A DNA stretch of 64,000 nt from Glycera tridactyla (lineage: Eukaryota), in assembly GCA_965644265.1 (NCBI GenBank), contig OZ286469.1:64604001-64668000 (forward strand), given 5' to 3'. The notes under the pieces were generated by a model. It saw only the letters and a program-made list of their open reading frames with translations. It made no database searches and was not told the DNA's origin. This document shows, piece by piece, positions 16,806 to 44,900 of the stretch; within the stretch, counting starts at the first letter, position 1, and every line of letters begins with the position of its first letter. The position numbers were made by a program, and so were the translations under genes.

Positions 16806-19800
16806 GAACCCACATCATGGTATCATTCAAAAAGAGCAAATGTCAAAATTTGCATCGTCTCTTTAACCATCACATTTGTGCAGTACCGATTTGTGAATTA
16901 TACAAATTGCACATCAGGACATAGGAATTAAAAAAAGGGGTGAAGACCAGTCTTCCAATATTGTGCTGTATGTTGATCTATATTGCTCACCAGGCAACAG
17001 AGATGAAGCTCATAAACATGTATAGGAAGAAATAGATAAGGACACGAACTTTACATGAACGCATTCACGCCGGATATTCCGGCGTTATATAAAGACACCA
17101 TTAGCATGGGAATAATCTCATACTCATCAAGTGTCAAAAGCCATATTGCTTCTGGAAATGTATCAAATCCAAAAAATCTTCAATAAAGAGAGAACAATCC
17201 CTGCTTGATAAGGGCAATTTTAATGATTATGAAAGAAGAAACATTTAATTTAAAAGACCAATCAAAAATTAAGATCATTGAAGGCAGCTGAGGGTCATTT
17301 ATTGTTCTTAATAAATAATGGAAGTCACAGACGTTATTCAAGAAGGATAATAGATCTTTGTTGTAAGACAATGAACCTTGGATGAAAAAAAGTGTTAAGA
17401 GTAGAATTAAGCAAATGTCTGTTTTATCAAAAGATTTTAGTAATTAAAATCACCCACCCCTCCCTTCATACTATGTATATATGGTACACATGACATTTAC
17501 AATGGAGAAATACGCAATTGCTTGTTTTCAACATGTGGATCACATTTAGCATTTATTCCAACAGACAGAGGACCTTTTCAATGAGGTCTTCGTGCACAAA
17601 ATAGCTGCCCACTCCCTGTTGTTAACATTACTGGAGGACTGACGCAAATTGGAGCATTCTCTCTGAATTTGGATGCTCACAAACTTCACTAAAACCTCCA
17701 ACAATCCAGTGTGACACACGTTCAGTGGCATCCCAGTAATATTATACAAAATGGGAATCCTTCACTGATATCTTGTCACCAGATGAGTAAACTCATTCAC
17801 CTGAATGCCAACACTCAAAGTCTATTCCATCCTAACGGGCCAATGTGGTTCTGTAGTCATGAAGCTAAGGAACAATAGAAACTAATAAACTCATGTAGTA
17901 ATTAATCCTTCTAGCCACCAGAATAGAAAGAAACCACGCACACGACTCCTTCACAAGAACTAACACAGGGACACACCGCGGTTATCATGTAAACTACCTA
18001 AAACCTACTGCGGGAATCCACCCAGCTGAATCTCACAGTAGTCACGGTTTGGAATGGACATTTGACGAGATGTTCCCATATGAATCAAACTAGAACTGCA
18101 TAAGCCTCACTGACACTGCTACAAAAAACACCGGAATTATCTCTATGTCCTGACACAGCTCCAATGAAAAAAACACTCCAGGAGGGTACAAGGAAGCAAA
18201 AACAAGATATCTAATGTACAATCTATCTGGGAAAAATCCAGTTTAGCAGCTCAACGTGTATGTCTTATCGTCATTTACATCTAACTGCACTCGTTAATGT
18301 ATGCATATATTAACACTGTGTTTACACCTAACGGACTGCACATGACATTTCTATTCACACATGAATCCAACAGACGATGAGCAGCTCCTCAATTTACACT
18401 TCTGCATCATTGATGTGAGCATGTGTGCTTTATTTGCTTCATGTGCGCGGTTTCGACAAGAAGCAATGACCACACACTGCACCACTGAACATACTCTCCC
18501 TTGCGAATAAAACGGGACTTCAATCCAACCCTCCGAAGGAGACTTCATCCTTTTTGCTCACAAGGGAGGTTGAATGGCTATAAAACACCTATAATATCAA
18601 CAGTTCTTATGACAATACAAACTTTCTGAGACATTATTGGGTTATATAAGTGACATATAAACAAGTATAACACAGTATCCACCCTGACAAAATGCTTACA
18701 ATCGCCATGACAACGCCCTATATTTAGTACATCCTGCTCTCCATCGTCATTGTTTATCAGGTAAGACAGTCTCGTTCCCTGGCACTTGTGTATACACCAA
18801 AGCGGTCAGCTGTATGTGTGATATCAGGTTGAATATCAAACGTACTTCTGGCCGCTTTGTGATACAAGAGAGCCATGGAGCGAGCATCAGTCAATGTCTT
18901 ACTCAGCAGTTCTACAATGTTTACAGACTGACTCATGAAAGCTTGGCCCTCAGAAATGTATAAAAATCTCTACCAATACTACATACATGTATACATACAA
19001 AAATAGATAAAATGTAAACATTGCAAATCCAGAAGAGTGGTCCCTTTGTGAGGTTAGCAACTCATTGGTCAACACAAACACTTCATTATCTGCAGCACAG
19101 ACTCGCAGATGCCATGTGGATACTTACAGCGTATGCATGCATGTGTCAGCGAACTACTGTAGTACACAGTCTTTCAGTCCCGTAAGGCATATGCTATAAA
19201 CAGACTTATGTTGGTCACTCGGAGCATTATCTTCGATACCACCTTTTAGAGGAAAGAGGAAGAACAAGCCAGACTTCGTCCTATGGCCTCTGTCGGAATC
19301 GGTCCTCTTCTATTCTCAGTAAGGCTATACCCCGCACAATGCTCCAGTGGCAAACATAAATCCAATATCGACATGCTCTGTAAGAGGAAATCTGTGCACA
19401 GATTTGTGATTATGCTGACAAAAGACCTGTCAAATCAATGCAGCGTGACTATCATGCATCAAAACTTCTCCCGGATTTTGTATATTAATGTACATCAAAC
19501 CCTGCGGTTATGACATCTTCAAGACATGACTGCATTAGTAGAACAGGCCCCAGAGAGTTGGCCCCATGAGGACAAAGCCATTCATTGATTTTGACACAAG
19601 ATCTATAAGTGTGGTATACCAACAAACGTAAGGCATGCAAGATAGCCTTAAACAACCTAGGTAAAGCAAGCAGCCAAAGCATTGCAAGACGTACACTGGG
19701 GCCTTCACACTCCCAACTGCAGTGAAGAAGTAATGAATAATGGCAGCGACAGGCCAACATGTGGTTGCAATTGTTCACGATTTCTTCGCTCCATCCGAGC

Positions 19801-22118
19801 GTGTAGAAGCCTCAGTGTACTGCTCTCGTGGAATCAACATTCACTAAAAGCCTGACGATCACTTGCATTGACGCTTCCTGTTTACAGTGGAACCGAAGAG
19901 CAGGTTTCAGTTACTCAACAAAACATATTCCATCATGACTTTCACTCTCTTGCTTTTGTCAGTAAGTAACTTGACAAGGCCATTTCTTTCTGGAGTTGCA
20001 ATGTGAACAACTCTCCCGAAGAGATGTGAGCATTTTCAATTTTTAATTTGTGATGATGTTGATTTTTCAACAGTCAGGTCTTGTCACGCCCAGGAGATGG
20101 CTCCTGATAGTTTCGTCACACCTGGTTTCAATGTGACAGCCACTCAAAATTGGCCATTGCCTGGGCATAATTCATTCTGCGTCAACACTGTAAAACAGAA
20201 TAGGGAAACTAAGACATGCAGTAGGGCGATAAAAAACAACACGTTGTTCCACCAAAGTTCTATTACTCGACAGTGCATGCATATTAGCCTACAAACTCCT
20301 AACTAAGGTCAGCCTAACCCTCACTGGCTTATAACCAGTGTTCCAGGTCAAGATCCAGAAAATCTTCATGCTGAGCAGCTGTAGAACTCCTTCGGCACTG
20401 GGACTTTTGCAAGTCTCAAAAGCCGCAGTGTCGGAGAAATAATACAGGGAATGCCTCAGCATCAGTATTTTCTGGAATCTTCTACCTGGGTGAGTTGGCT
20501 GCCAAAGCAGGAATGCAGGATATATTTAAGAAGAAAAAAAGAAATGCAGATGTTATAATTCCTCATAAATGACACAGATTAAACCAGTACCAAATGATCA
20601 AAGACAAATGAAAAGATTGAAAAACAAACAAATCAGTGTTTCATGAATTTTAGCACAAGTTTGCTTCAAAATATAACAACACCAAAAACCAGTGGATGTA
20701 TTACACAACCATCAACATTGGAAAGAGCATCCATTTTGGTCAAGCATCTTTACCTTGAACCAATGCATTGTAAAACTAGAGACCAAATATATTCTGTGAG
20801 GCCATCAGCCAACGGTCAGTTAGGATTCTGGCGTTCAACCACAAGAAGACATCCATTCAAGTATCACAACATCCCCTTCCATTATCAAATCCAATGGTAA
20901 TGCCATTGGCTTCAGTCATGGGAGAGTCTCATCATGGTTGAATGGACAATATTAATCTTGTGGAAGCATGCCAATGAAACCAACTTATGCCCTGCAGCTG
21001 ATCAGCAACGCAGAATACATTCAAACTTTTACCATACAATGATCAAACGCCAAGAAGCTGGACCAAAATACTGCTTCCGATGAAGATGATATCACAAGTA
21101 GATCGTTAAATTTGGATTTGGAAAATTGCTGGTGGCGGTATAGGAATGGTTTCTGACTTTCTGTTTTACAGTCTTGCCCAGAACTGACCTATCAATGAGT
21201 CATTACATATTAAGCAAGTGGTAAAAACATCAAACACCAAGAATCGACACATACTGGTTGAACCAGCACCTTCCCTCCGCTGTAATGTTGCCAACATGTA
21301 CAAACGATGATGCATGTCGGGATATCCAATAAAGCAGTGTTCACCTGTGATATATGATGCATGGGGAAGCCAGAATTGAGCACGCTAGTTACATCTGCTA
21401 TGGTCATGGCTGTTGCCCAAGGACAACAGCTATCGCCATAACAACTGGAATTAGGATGCTCAACTGGTATGAGAAGATACATGTCATGGAGCTATGAATG
21501 ATGCCTGGTCAGAGCAGCATTTATGCCATTTGCTTTCATCCGACTTGTCGTCTCTCAAACAACAAGCATGACTAAAGCAACGGAAGACAGCGTACTCTGA
21601 TCAGACCAACTATGATGAGACAGACAGTAATGCATTCTTTCTATCAGTGAACCAAAACAAAAGGTGAAGATGTCAGGTACATCACAGACTGAGAGATGCT
21701 TGATCAATCATGGGGGGGTCGTTCTTGCTGGTTGATGTAGTTACGTGTTATATATATATATATATAATAATTACAGTGCCCACAGCCTGTGTAGCCAGGT
21801 CACCCCAATGGTTCAGGATGCACCCTGTTCATCCACAGCCCTCCCCACACACAAGACACACACACCAGCCACTATAGATCCAGTAAATCGAACACTATCT
21901 TAAGCAGTATGTGCAGAAATTTGAACACATCTGTTATGGTTTTTATGCAAAAAGAAGGGTCATATTTCATCATTGTAAGATGGTTACTACAATTTACAAA
22001 TAAGAATAATTTTTCTTAGTTTGAGTATGAATATTATAAAGTAGACTTGAAATTGATTGGAACTTCTTCAACTGCATACTGTTTAATATGTAAAATTTCC
22101 ATAAAATTATTGTGCAAA

Positions 22119-22124
22119 TTTATT
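22119..22124 (-). promoter_or_regulatory. Candidate proximal polyadenylation signal (AATAAA) for the TIA1/TIAL1 transcript
   Basis: First AATAAA on the minus strand downstream of the GC-rich terminal coding region, in U-rich context. Confidence 0.35.
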
Positions 22125-22593
22125 CGAAAAATGAATAAAACGTGTAATACTGGGAAACAAGTGCTATATATGATAAATACATGGTGACAAGATGGACATG
22201 AAGATTTGAAAAAGAGAAAAAAGAACACAAAAATGACTATAATGGTAGAAAATGATTGCTTCGTGGAAATGATATGGAGTATTCCGATGGGTGGACAGTA
22301 GTGGCTGCTGATGGGACATAGTGATAGGGGGCGCCGCTATCTGAGATGATGAGGGGCACTGACGGGGCCGCGGCCGCGTCACCAGTTGGTGACGCCGCAA
22401 AAGCGGCCGGAGGTGAGTGGGCTATACAAGATGGGGTTTTCATGATGGCGTCGCCAACGCCTAGTGGGGATGATAGACAACGCCACGAGGCGGCGGCGGC
22501 GCCAGCATCATCGCTTATGCCTGCACCCCTTGAACACTCTGGGCCTAAACAGCTAGCACTGCACAGTGGGAGGAGAGCTCTCTCTAAAAGGGG

Positions 22594-23020
22594 TCACTTA
22601 TAATGTTTCACTTTGGGAGAGATCATGTGCTCCCGGTCGTCACCACCATTACGTGAGTATGGGTGCGCCCGAACATTCGAAGACGGCTGATCGGAAGATG
22701 GAGAGTATTTTGATTTTTGGAATTTGAGAAAAGGATTTTCGACTTGAGTTGGGGAAGAATCTGCCTGCTCTGAGGGGAAGGCACCAGAGGAGGTGGGAGT
22801 AGCTACAGTGCCAGAGATGGTGGAGGACGGTGTGTTTGTAACACCGGTGGACTGCGGCGATGTGAAACGAGGAGGTAAACGAGGTGTGGAGGAAAGCGCA
22901 CCTTGCTGTATAGGGTGATATCCCAGCATGCTCGCTGCTGCCGTCTGCTGCCCGTTGTAGGTTTGCTGCTGCCCCGGTGTCATTTGCATCCCTGTCCACT
23001 GCATTGGCATGTTCATGCCT
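22594..23020 (-). CDS. TIAL1: TIA1/TIAL1 last coding exon ([39 protein letters not shown]...KVKHYK*)
   Basis: Acceptor gctgtgttacag|A completes the Gly codon in phase 2; Q/M-rich start continues the prion-like domain; TGA at 22594-22596. Confidence is higher for 22902-23020 than for the distal part. Confidence 0.8.
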
Positions 23021-26000
23021 CTGTAACACAGCATCAACGATACCCACATAAGTCCCATCAAGTTCATCCACACGGACCCACACACAAAGTTCATTCAAAA
23101 ATAAAAGGTATATATGATCAAAGTATTATTCAGCTACTTTGGAATGACAATTGTGACGTTTTGGCAACGTTTCGACCATCCATCTAGTGGCCTTGGTCAG
23201 ATGATGGGTTTTGTAGCCCGGTGTCACATGACCAACGCCACTGGAAGACTTGTCGAAATGTCAATTTGGGTTTGAAAATGAATGAAAAATACTTTGATCA
23301 TGGATCATCTTGGAACTAAAATGAACATATCAACAAAAGATATATAGTTCCACAATTCCTAGAAAATCCTGCAGACTGACATTCACACTGACCAAATACT
23401 CAAATGTCCTTTCTGGTGACCTAAATGCAGCACATCATATCATTGATCTTGTATGGGAAGTTTGACATAATCTTTCCAAGTGTTTAGTCAATTTTGGTTT
23501 TCTGTATGCTCAAAATATTTGAATGATTCAGAGTAATCAATCGAGTTTTGATCAGATTCATATGCATGTCAAATATATTCCTGCTGTATGATAATGACTT
23601 GAATAAAGCGAACCTTGGCCCACCATCAGAGATTCTCTGAAGTGACAATATTTCACCAAATTCAAGTGTTTGATCACTAATGTAAGTTCACTAAATTTTG
23701 GATGGCCATTTCAGCTATGATTGAGCTTATAGTAGAAACTTGGATCATGCTCCAATGTATATGACAAGTGAAGCAAGCTAATTGGTCTATGAGGAAGAGG
23801 CTTGTCGGATACATGGTGGGCTGACAAGACATGTCTGTATGATAATGCAATATAATGTGCATAAGTAACAATAGATAACTTATAAATAATAGGAAGTGAA
23901 ATACCTGATCAACTCTGGCAAAATTCACATGATCTTCCAGAGAAGAAAAAACATACTCACCAACCAACTTCTGAATGATCCCAGTTCAGTAATGAATCCC
24001 TTCTGNNNNNNNNNNNNNNNNNNNNNNNNNNNNNNNNNNNNNNNNNNNNNNNNNNNNNNNNNNNNNNNNNNNNNNNNNNNNNNNNNNNNNNNNNNNNNNN
24101 NNNNNNNNNNNNNNNNNNNNNNNNNNNNNNNNNNNNNNNNNNNNNNNNNNNNNNNNGGAGTTGCAAGCTCCACTGAGAAGAAACTAAGGGCTGAGCCTTG
24201 TTCCTATATTACCTGTACATACCTGTGACACCAACAGCAATGAGTACTCCTGGTCTGCTACTTTCTATGGTTTTGAGTAGAAAAGTGTTAAAAAACTCAC
24301 CCAATGCTTGCTATTCCCACCAGTTGGACAGATCCATCACTTACCTAACTACACCGACATTGTCCCGATTTCTGATATGATATGATGTGATATGATATGA
24401 TATATATCAATGGAGCCACTGAACTCATACAGAATTTCCTGAGTCATAATCAAATTTATGGGAAATACTTGATTTGAAAGTTTCAGTATGATTCCACATT
24501 TCGCTTTTGCAAGTCTGAAAGCAGAGAAGTTCCACAAAAAGTGGCCTCACTGTATATGATATAACCTAAGAACAAGAACCACCCTTCAGGTACTAACCAT
24601 TCATCAATGGACAGAGGAAGTCTTTCAGACTATACATACACAATAGACTCTGTCTGAGGACTGGTTTCTGCTCAAGGGGTGGTTTTTGTTCAAGAGGTTG
24701 GCAAAAATGTAGAAATAAAATCACACAAATGGCTAATGATGACCACTAAAAAATGAGAAAGATGAAAAATGATTCATGAATGAAATATTGTGGGAAGAAT
24801 CTGGAAATGGTAAAACTCACCCCTGGTATCCATAGCCGGCTTGCTGCATATATGGTTGCATGTATCCGGGTGTCTGTTGAGCGGCCATTGTTTGCTGGTA
24901 ACCCTGGGGGTACCAGTAGCTCATCTGCCCCGCGTAGTAAGGTTGCCCGTAAGCTGCTTGACCAGCAAACTGCTGCTGAAACCAAACACAAAATTCACAC
25001 CAACTGTTTTAACAAGAATTCATCATTTATCCATACTGCAATCAGCAAGTAGATACATTTTCTATCCCCCCCCCCCCCCCCCCAAAAAAAAAGATAATTG
25101 AACAAAATGTTTAGCTGGATACAAGATCGATCTCTCAAGGTACAGGCTCAATACACAAAATCGGGGTCACTATTAAAATGAAGTTCGTTTGTTTGAGGTT
25201 TAACGGCATGTATCAACCCTAGGGTTATGTATGCCGTGCGTTCCTGGTTAATCAAAGCTAGATGTTCTCTCCCCTGCAGACATGAGGAAACAACTTCATG
25301 AGTTATATACATTTCAAGAATCATTCAACTGGAGAAATAGAGATCAAGATAAATGAGAGCGCAGACACATTTCATGTACACTCACACTTTAATGTGATGG
25401 GTACAAGAATCTTAGAGGATTATGACCAAATTTAAAGCAACAATTCACTGCAGACTATATTCCCTCCAACCCCTTTGTCTTATTACACATGAAAATCCTC
25501 CAAACAAATTTTCAATGATCATTCTATATTTGGTTAATAGAAGCATCATGCAGGGAGCACCAAGTGATTCCGATGAATATTGAAGTGAATTGACTTATTC
25601 TGCCCCATGCAATATAAGATAGTTCAGTAAGAGAACAGGAAGTGTGGTTATATGATTTTGAAAAAATTATGTAAAAAGCACAAAGAATTATCACTCAAAA
25701 AAATCAATCAAGCTATTGATATTCTTGAGTCTTTAGCAGAAGGCAACCACAAGTGTTGAAAACCACTCTTCCTAATTCCATTTTCACTTCCATGATATTC
25801 TATTATCACTCCTCAATCCAGTGGCATTGATGATGAAGTTATACCTTGGATGATACCATGAGTAACAATTGGGCAAGCTTCTGAAGAATTCAAAAGTTTC
25901 TAGTCACCAGACATGTCTCCATCCTAAAGAGATACAGGGGTCTGGCTTGGGATAAAAACTAACTTCATTTCAGAGTTATATTTGGGTGAAATGAGATACA

Positions 26001-41900: not shown

Positions 41901-44900
41901 TCACAAAATGAAATCTACATGTGAGTATCAATACATGAAACGCAGAACAAGAACAGTGAATGCAAGCATTCAACCAATGTCTTCAATGGAACCTGCAAAT
42001 TGAGACCACCGCGGATGACAAAATTAATTGGTCTCTCGATGATATATCAGCTTGCTCGGAATAGTGCACTTCTGAAACGTGGTCCATCAATACCACTGAA
42101 ATATTGTTGCAGGTTCCACTGAGAACATTTCTTAACAAGGAAGCAGCACAAACCAGAGCCCTTCCCATCATTTAGTAAAGTCCTTGTGACTATGACCTAA
42201 TTTACAGAGAGTCATCCATTCAGTATCATCCTACTCCAGTCATCTCACACAAGCTCAGTAACATACTGTGATTGGCAAAGGTGTGTCTGATTGAAGTGGA
42301 AATGTGACAGGGATGAGGCAGCAAGGGAAAATGTTTGGGCCCTTTTGGCACATTTATGTGGTTTCTATGTGCGCCAATGAAGGTCATCCGATCAGAATGC
42401 ACTGATATATATGTGCATTTCGGGGGATCATGTACGGCCATATGTGCCATTTCTCAACTTCATGTGCCTTTTACAGAACAGGGCACATAGTCTAGCTATC
42501 CCACTTGTAATGAAAGCACCTACTTTCATTAAGATATGCCTCAGATTTGAGCAATCATACAAAACCTCTAAAGCTAGATCATTCACTGCAATACATCCAT
42601 ATTCCTACCACCCAAGTCAAACTATACTAGATCTTCTCCCAACATCTATATTAGTACTTGATTGATTAACCCATTCATAGTGTTATCTCCACATTCATTA
42701 TATTCTGGCAATCACATCAGTGATGGATACGAAGTGAAAAGATTCAATAAATTTGCCTGGATTGGCCAAAAACTGCTACCTTTATCAATTTTACATTAGG
42801 TTTTCTTATTCGAGTTAATGTATAGAATGATGACCAAAACTGTCACAAATTGGAAAATGGAAATATCAGAGATTTCATGCGAAAACCATGCGGTAAAGCA
42901 CAGAGAAATTATTCTCAGTAATGAACATATCTCTTGCATTTTTTGAGACAATTTTATTTATTTTTCTTGTTTTCCTTGATAACTCTTCCGATATGAAAAT
43001 GGGTTATCCAAAAGTTCTCTTGAACAATGAAGTAGCAGAGAAATCCTCAACTATGAATGGGTTATTTAGACAAGGCTTATTAGAGATTCTCATACAACCA
43101 ACAGTCATATCAGTCAACCTGGGTTAGTAATTATAGAAGCATCATTCACCACACAAAAGATCCACTAAACATGGGAATAAAATGTCCAATACTTCATTTG
43201 TTTGGTTGATATTTTGCAAATTGGCAATGATGCAAAATAAGTCCAAATTCTAATAATCGCCTGACTTTTTCATACTCTCTTACAAGGTGTAAACACAGGC
43301 AGGATCATTCCATATCATTATAAATCACATCAGATATTTCACAAAATGTAATATAATAAGACCATTTCCAAATCTTTTAATAAGATATATTGTTAGAATC
43401 TAAGTTTTATCCATGTATCTTGAGTGCTATCCATGTCAAGAATACATCAATCATGGTCAATTTCTGGAATGGATAAATAGTTGGGTAATCGATAAAAGAT
43501 GAGTATGACCCATATGTATATACTTGAGTTGCTTGAAAATTCAAAAATCACAACTGATATGTTTGAATGAGCACTGGCGTGTAGTTGTATTTTCATTTGT
43601 ATCACAAAAGGGTCCAAGTTGCCTTCAGAGCAAGGAATGAATATTGAAAATTCAAAGTATGAATACAGTGGCCTGATGTCAAGAGCCGATCAGGGATCTT
43701 GAATAGCATGCAAAATTTTCATTGAAGAAAGAATGCATGCACTTTAATATTCAATATGCTGCTTATCTTGTACTGTATCATTTTGGTGGATATTTGTGTG
43801 GTGACAAAGGTGACTCAGTTAAAGAGTCAGGCAGAAGAGGAGGAGGATGTGTCAGTATAACCGCCCTTAATTATCCCCCATCAAGATAATATGGCTGACC
43901 TGCTTTAGCTTGATGAGATTCTACAAAATAAACACAAAATGAAAAACAAAAAGTGCCACAAGAAGTTCACACAAACACAAATTTAAGGGATGCATACACT
44001 CCAGCAGACCTGCTACTTAACTGCTGCAGTCATAGCAAACTGAGGGGGCGACTGAATAATTGATTGATCTGCATTAAGTATCCCTTTTATGGGATATATT
44101 GATAAAGCCTGAATGCTATCCATTTAATCCATTCACATGACCTTCACCAGTACAGGACCATTTCCTACCACTTCAGTAGGGGATAAAGAGTTGGTTGCTT
44201 AGATGTTTGTTTCACATCTGGTGAGCACCATTTGGGCTATATTGAAATGCCCATGCGTTGGTCATGGTGGGATCATACAGGTCTTTTCTCTCTTGGTCCC
44301 TAAAAGGAGGGGAAAATTCATGAAATTCCAAAACACTCAAGGTGACATTTCTGCAGGGTGGGGTAAGGGAAGAAGAGTTTGAGGTGTGGTAGATAAATTA
44401 CAGCTCCGATTATACAAAATTATACCGACATTCTTTGCAAGATGGTCAGCCTAAGCCCCCATTATCATCAACATGTCACAGAAGACCTTCATGATTTATC
44501 AGAATTTTCTTTTTATCATTTCATCTATGAGAAAAATAACAATCAGAAGTTTTATCTGATTCATAGTACAGAACACCAATACTGAAGTTGAAATAGAAAC
44601 TAATGAATCTCATGTAAGCTTTCAGATGAATATGATCTAGCTTAAAATATCCCATGAATGTACATCACATGAGTTCTGCAGTATCAGTGGCAGAAATTGG
44701 TCAGGTCAATGAACGAAGACCAATGTGAGATGGAAAGAGTCAGAATAAATGAATGACATTTGCATGGCGACCCGCTGACTTTTGCAATGAATTGATAGAT
44801 GAGGGAAGAGGGAATCAGGCAGAGAAGGAATGCAGCAAGGGGGCTTCTTCCGTCTATCTGCGAACGCCTGGGGAAACACAGGCAGGTCGTGCTCGGGGAA

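Follow-up and report, generated by a model that had tools for sequence, protein, structure and literature searches.

Insects and a handful of vertebrate genes provide well-documented cases of conserved readthrough extensions; in lophotrochozoans such extensions are, to our knowledge, almost undocumented. TIA-1 and TIAR, for their part, splice their own pre-mRNAs alternatively, at weak 5′ splice sites with U-rich tracts after them. How leaky a stop is varies with the stop codon itself and with its 3′ nucleotide, and readthrough candidates are recognised by conserved stops with coding signatures past them (PMC5100048). The same work infers abundant readthrough in Pancrustacea only, and it cites a proposal of 2013 for an annelid case, Platynereis EFLGa, which we describe here as that citation gives it. 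Yeast Pub1 and Drosophila Rox8, homologues of TIA-1, are counted among the accessory factors of translation termination, and overexpression of Rox8 left readthrough of the tested reporter unchanged (PMC9226519).

The locus considered here is the 3′ end of a minus-strand gene in a 64-kb window, by which we mean the whole stretch of DNA analysed. It shares with the readthrough genes of Jungreis et al. (PMC5100048) an open frame past the stop, a conserved TGA whose +4 base is C, a coding-type pattern that is specific to the frame and ends at a second stop, and a host that is a long gene for a regulatory RNA-binding protein. It differs from them in being judged from one pairwise comparison instead of a multi-species alignment, in belonging to an animal outside Pancrustacea, in having no supported stimulatory RNA structure, and in being a case known from sequence alone. 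If the present animal is an annelid, Platynereis EFLGa, as cited, is a case from its own phylum for which readthrough has been proposed, but that gene encodes a neuropeptide precursor and not an RNA-binding protein. With the alternative splicing by TIA-1/TIAR of their own pre-mRNAs, the locus has in common a donor-like site at 22901 and a pyrimidine tract; it differs in that use of the donor is not seen in RNA contigs and that the partner acceptor is not conserved. Pub1 and Rox8 belong to the protein family of the host gene and, by analogy, an action of the host protein on its own stop would be possible in principle.

The upstream open segments of the host gene carry RRM pieces (Pfam RRM_1 matches). 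Compared with PDB chains, the exon at 29850-29602 (minus strand) matches RRM3 of TIAR (1x4g, E=3e-11) and TIA-1 (2mjn, E=2e-8), and Q/Y/G-rich exons at 24978-24821 and 23019-22903 (minus strand) lie downstream of this RRM3 exon. By the two criteria of RRM3 similarity and a Q-rich C-terminal domain behind it, the sequence identifies the host as a member of the TIA-1/TIAR family. RNA contigs of four public runs (X1, X2, X6, and X5) were aligned to 19200-25100; X1, X2, and X6 carry two organism labels and are identical in sequence, and X5 comes from a closer relative, organism B. The joint 24821>23020 is present in the contigs of X1, X2, and X6, so the last exon begins at 23020. From there the features of interest are as follows.

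22597..23020, minus strand: coding part of the last exon, from spliced contigs and from the substitution pattern of the tail against a relative's contig, L001
23019-22903, minus strand: end of the Q-rich domain, within the last TIA-1/TIAR exon
22902-22597, minus strand: 102-residue S/T/P-rich tail, within the last TIA-1/TIAR exon
22594..22596, minus strand: TGA stop, followed by C at 22593; the CCCC context is also found in the relative (L001 715-713)
22240..22593, minus strand: in-frame, A/S/P-rich extension of 118 codons, whose frame is open in L001 as well as in the window, with coding-type evolution
22522..22578, minus strand: near-invariant 57-nt block with one change, beginning 16 nt past the stop
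22237..22239, minus strand: TAG closing the extension, at the same place in the relative (L001 355-353)
22085..22236, minus strand: U-rich 3′UTR, at 95% identity with the relative; AATAAA lies at 22124-22119

The ORF of the last exon has a C-terminus in ...KVKHYK, followed by the TGA. The preliminary description of this DNA had reported that the frame stays open beyond that stop, and this is exact: the 118 codons run from 22593 to the TAG at 22239-22237, and the stop context is UGA-C. It had also seen the composition change abruptly at the TAG, and indeed the G+C content falls from 0.63 (22300-22499) to 0.26-0.31 (22000-22299).

The tail upstream of the stop serves as a reference for known coding sequence. 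Compared with X5, 6 of the 11 listed changes are at third positions of the ORF frame and 5 are synonymous; the tail 3′ of the donor-like site is accordingly coding and not intronic. The tail (22597-22902; L001 716-1024) is lineage-specific, and one stretch of it, of 20 residues, is fully conserved as protein. This stretch contains an NPF motif, which we take to be an EH-domain-binding motif, and directly after it the relative has an in-frame insertion of 18 nt. The last-exon peptide has no match by word search, in JGI metagenome contigs, or among 1.84 billion representatives. Likewise, for the extension there is no Pfam match in a scan of all pieces, and no protein relative by word search or in JGI metagenome contigs, the pieces being searched separately; the ESM Atlas look-alikes of the extension score 0.81 or lower and are uninformative. 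These searches are subject to a length filter and to clustering at 50%, so a blank is no proof that relatives do not exist. Within the 64-kb window the extension is single copy, with no repeated or duplicated segment.

A nucleotide comparison is possible nonetheless. An antisense ORF at 22328-22600 (plus strand), used as query, returned a single protein, P0001 (E=1.7e-29, 74% identity), which had been called on L001, a scaffold of 1025 nt from a metagenome assembly in ENA. L001 is the relative's genomic copy of the window from 22888 to about 22080 (alignment A1) and the sole relative covering 22240-22593, so that the comparison of the extension is pairwise. The preliminary description had left it to related genomes to say whether the TGA itself is conserved, and in this one TGA-CCCC (L001 715-713) and TAG (355-353) are both kept in place. 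The frame between them is open in L001 for 119 codons, and a single 3-nt insertion, after 22358, makes up the whole difference in length. In the tail there is one in-frame 18-nt indel, and identity is 81.5%. Substitutions at first, second, and third codon positions are distributed as follows.

Tail: 15/8/31, p=5e-4, dN/dS 0.235
Extension, ORF frame: 10/14/29, p=0.0034, dN/dS 0.287
Extension, other two sense frames: dN/dS 1.06 and 1.09
UTR, 22236-22095: 1/3/3, 95% identity, no period-3 pattern

Thus, for the one relative available, a codon-substitution check of the kind that had been suggested is positive past the TGA (dN/dS 0.287), with p=7e-5 for dN<dS over the extension by Fisher's test. Every sub-interval of the extension shows the third-position excess, with 3/3/9, 6/7/14, and, for the 36 codons that lie outside the antisense ORF, 1/1/4. 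The first five codons past the TGA are poorly conserved and the last 36 residues strongly so. The order of first- and second-position changes in the extension, 10 vs. 14, is opposite to that in the tail (15 vs. 8). The TAG is a boundary, with period-3 evolution before it and uniformly conserved U-rich sequence after it. Given the conserved stops, the frame-specific excess of third-position changes, and a sole indel of 3 nt, the extension looks like coding sequence, and we consider it probable, from this pairwise alignment, that coding constraint acts on it in the sense frame.

Similarity to L001 stops about 35-40 nt past the AATAAA at 22124-22119, in keeping with a conserved poly(A) site. U-rich tracts are the type of sequence bound by TIA-1/TIAR. 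The U-rich 3′UTR, at 95% identity, is far more conserved than the tail (81.5%) or than synonymous sites (dS 0.4-0.5), and the segment 22085-22236 is, by its conservation, probably a strongly selected regulatory UTR.

How would ribosomes come to translate the extension? The account that we propose, tentatively and at somewhat under an even chance, is that of a coding-constrained extension reached by readthrough of the conserved UGA-C. The TIA-1/TIAR frame would continue through the 354 nt between TGA and TAG under purifying selection on the encoded amino acids. A minority of ribosomes would read the conserved UGA-C by means of a near-cognate tRNA and go on to translate 118 further codons up to the conserved TAG, and the product would be a minor isoform, in which the tail that follows the Q-rich prion-like domain gains an A/S/P-rich extension. 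Readthrough would be the preferred route because it fits all the observations and needs no extra element. Since abundant readthrough is inferred only in Pancrustacea, the prior for it in this lineage is low, and other routes have to be weighed with some care.

The first of these is splicing. The preliminary description had put forward an intron of 318 nt whose removal would take out the TGA and join the tail to the extension in frame, and for it the following sites come into question.

22896..22904, minus strand: donor-like AAG/GTGCGC, agreeing with 7/9 consensus positions; passed unspliced in contigs
22584..22593, minus strand: acceptor-like CCCCTTTTAG; an X1 contig is colinear across it, and the AG is absent in the relative

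As to the sites themselves, the proposal was accurate: the donor is CAAG/GTGCGC, with its GT at 22901-22900 and TTTCCTCC after it, the acceptor CCCCTTTTAG has its AG at 22585-22584, and removal of the 318 nt is in frame. As to their use, it finds no support: no joint is found in the contigs and the acceptor AG is unconserved. The tract after the donor, UUUCCUCC, is not U-rich. The in-frame pair is not special either, since 130 equivalent GT..AG pairs remove the TGA and keep the frame open, among which the donor at 22901 scores best. The junction that the intron predicts, 22902>22583, does not occur among the contigs of the four runs, where the sole joint reported is 24821>23020. Contigs are colinear through the donor in X2 (22719-23020), X1 (22743-22929), X6 (22861-23020), and X5 (22765-22970). 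An X1 contig at 22400-22704 crosses both the TGA and the acceptor with no differences from the window, and another, at 22069-22413, crosses the TAG; the spliced RNA contigs are thus colinear over 23020-22069 with the TGA retained, with the proviso that contigs drop rare variants and that rare spliced or edited forms could be missed. In the relative, the acceptor site reads CCCCAATCCG, with AATCCG for TTTTAG and hence CG for AG (L001). The donor, 13 nt beyond the end of L001, is unchanged in X5 but lies within coding sequence. The prevalent mRNA retains the TGA and the 318 nt, the main product ends in ...KVKHYK, and the 318-nt intron is not supported. The autoregulated switch between two tails that the preliminary description had linked to TIA-1 finds no support here either.

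A rare alternative splice that takes out the TGA may still lead to a coding extension, through this intron or through some other in-frame intron, for example, from the conserved donor CAC/GTAATG at 22652 to conserved AGs at 22462-22461 or 22309-22308. The window has 130 in-frame GT..AG pairs, 66 in-frame pairs are conserved in both species, the donor at 22901 does agree with the consensus at 7/9 positions, and contigs would drop a minor isoform. We nevertheless consider such a splice unlikely: 24821>23020 is the only joint in four runs, the TGA and both sites of the 318-nt intron are crossed unspliced, the acceptor AG of that intron is absent in the relative, and coding-type substitutions reach the TGA on its upstream side and resume soon past it.

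A second alternative does away with translation. The extension could be a G+C-rich 3′UTR, a decayed GCN-type repeat, or a segment under constraint at the RNA or DNA level, with a frame that is open by chance. The open frame alone is weak evidence against this, since chance makes it only mildly unlikely: 2.8% of dinucleotide shuffles leave the extension frame open, a neutral model keeps it open in 37%, and open frames of at least 100 codons are common within the window. Three-base periodicity speaks for coding. In phase with the ORF, it reaches a chi2 of 26.2, which matches known exons and places it among the top 0.6% of windows of 354 nt; G is favoured at the first codon position and C at the second, and a core at 22524-22255 lies above the 99.5th percentile. 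This signal stems mostly from 21 in-frame GCN codons, and also from in-frame NCA codons, and it vanishes once GCN is masked; masking the two GCC/GCG runs leaves it at p=0.006. There are, moreover, other low-complexity stretches of period 3 in the window that are not TIA-1 exons, and no protein relatives were found for the extension. Against an untranslated origin stand the substitutions, as the third-position excess and the dN/dS of 0.29 are specific to one frame, the sole indel is of 3 nt, and the adjoining true UTR evolves differently, being uniformly conserved at 95%. Tandem Repeats Finder, besides, finds no repeat here. On balance, an untranslated extension appears distinctly unlikely.

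A microsatellite origin of the periodicity was considered in its own right and rejected, since Tandem Repeats Finder finds no tandem repeat in the extension at a score of at least 30. Elsewhere in the window, periodicity of exon strength occurs at 61-870, 1051-1350, 4741-5040, and 43711-44040, with low-complexity translations (T/S-rich or H/C-rich), and short tandem arrays of 6, 12, and 18 nt are present at 746-780 and 4865-4899.

Returning to the ways in which the extension could be reached, three further routes may be grouped together, and as a group we regard them as quite improbable. The first is A-to-I editing of the UGA to UGG. Differences of the A>G type do cluster further downstream on the transcript, and a predicted fold pairs the A of the UGA, but the sole contig over the stop has no change at 22594. 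Initiation at the ATG at 22443, which is conserved in the relative, would provide a downstream ORF; yet the coding-type pattern is also found upstream of this ATG (3/3/9). Finally, the extension may be the decaying former coding sequence of a recently truncated gene, against which it can be said that the TGA is common to two species at a dS of about 0.4-0.5, hence not recent, and that the extension is still constrained.

Other features of the RNA contigs may be recorded here. Contigs of X1 and X2 are colinear for about 3 kb beyond the conserved poly(A) site (19318-22069), and the upstream intron is empty. Their differences in that region are mostly plus-strand T>C, that is, A>G in minus-strand RNA (21386, 21404, 21433, 21451, 21452, 19738, 19785, and 21075), and five of them lie within 67 nt (21386-21452). 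The pattern looks like A-to-I editing of a long 3′UTR isoform, though polymorphism could also account for it; no inverted-repeat partner for 21386-21452 is present in the window. In all runs, the intronic segments 23140-23340 and 24322-24518 show a high summed depth of contigs with numerous loose ends; they resemble expressed copies of dispersed repeats and not part of the mRNA of this gene.

The antisense frame through which L001 was found requires separate consideration.

22328..22600, plus strand: antisense open frame of 91 codons, sharing the third positions of the sense frame; it is the frame of the gene caller (P0001) on L001

On this alternative, a plus-strand gene from an ATG at 22346 to a TAA at 22603, of 85 residues, overlaps the 3′ end of TIA-1, and the sense extension is its shadow. 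The plus-strand ORF is open in both species with 74% identity and a dN/dS of 0.33, and in its frame the first- and second-position counts become 14/10, a slightly better fit. Discordant sites number 4 vs. 2 in the comparison of sense with antisense, and codon statistics do not decide the strand. The control is provided by the known coding tail, over which the antisense frame of the same phase has a dN/dS of 0.22, so that a low value is the expected effect of a shadow; after this control an antisense gene was dropped as the main reading. Its stop is, furthermore, unconserved, with 91 codons in the window vs. 127 in L001, counted from stop to stop. Both facts lead us to read the antisense frame as the shadow, and so does the sense frame itself, which is bounded by two conserved stops and is in phase with the upstream CDS. 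In addition, the 36 codons of the sense frame that the antisense ORF does not cover are well conserved and still show 1/1/4, the transcripts seen are the spliced minus-strand TIA-1 mRNA, and the antisense product has no Pfam match. Antisense stops in that phase need Tyr, His, or Gln codons in the sense frame, so the antisense is open only over the A/S/P-rich part. It is the sense frame, we infer, and not the antisense, that is selected, and an antisense gene is very improbable. On L001 itself (465-827, plus strand), the gene caller of the public collection chose the antisense shadow P0001 (120 aa) over the TIA-1 sense frames. G+C-rich disordered tails yield spurious antisense proteins in metagenome catalogues, and some caution in annotation is called for.

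If readthrough of the UGA-C is the route, it may be asked whether the RNA around the stop assists it. Two pairings that had been suggested fare badly: CCCCUU with AAGGGG loses two pairs in the relative, with no compensation, and the hairpin CACUG-UG-CAGUG would have a loop of 2 nt, which we take, by reasoning and not from a tool result, to be sterically impossible. The 117 nt after the TGA fold no more stably than shuffles (z=-0.45). In a two-species consensus fold all predicted pairs are invariant; there is no compensatory change, and structure is therefore neither supported nor refuted. The 57-nt block, at 22578-22522, is the paired core of a predicted stem-loop, in which the A of the TGA is paired as well.

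That the TGA encodes selenocysteine can practically be dismissed: the in-frame TGA is conserved, coding sequence lies on both sides, and the 3′UTR is highly conserved, but an Rfam scan of 17000-23100 at E<=1 finds no SECIS family and only a sub-threshold match to mir-598, the conserved UTR, inspected by eye, has no AUGA core, and around the TGA there is no redox-type motif.

One could imagine that TIA-1/TIAR tunes the readthrough of its own UGA-C by way of the 57-nt block or the U-rich 3′UTR. We consider this highly improbable; were it true, the ratio of the two tails behind the prion-like domain, and hence the behaviour of stress granules, would be set by recoding and not by splicing. If readthrough of the conserved UGA-C as such is correct, a stress-granule protein would carry a conserved extension of 118 residues behind its aggregation-prone domain. 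This would be a clear and testable case, with one stop codon, a well-defined product, and two candidate cis elements, namely, the 57-nt block and the ultra-conserved U-rich UTR.
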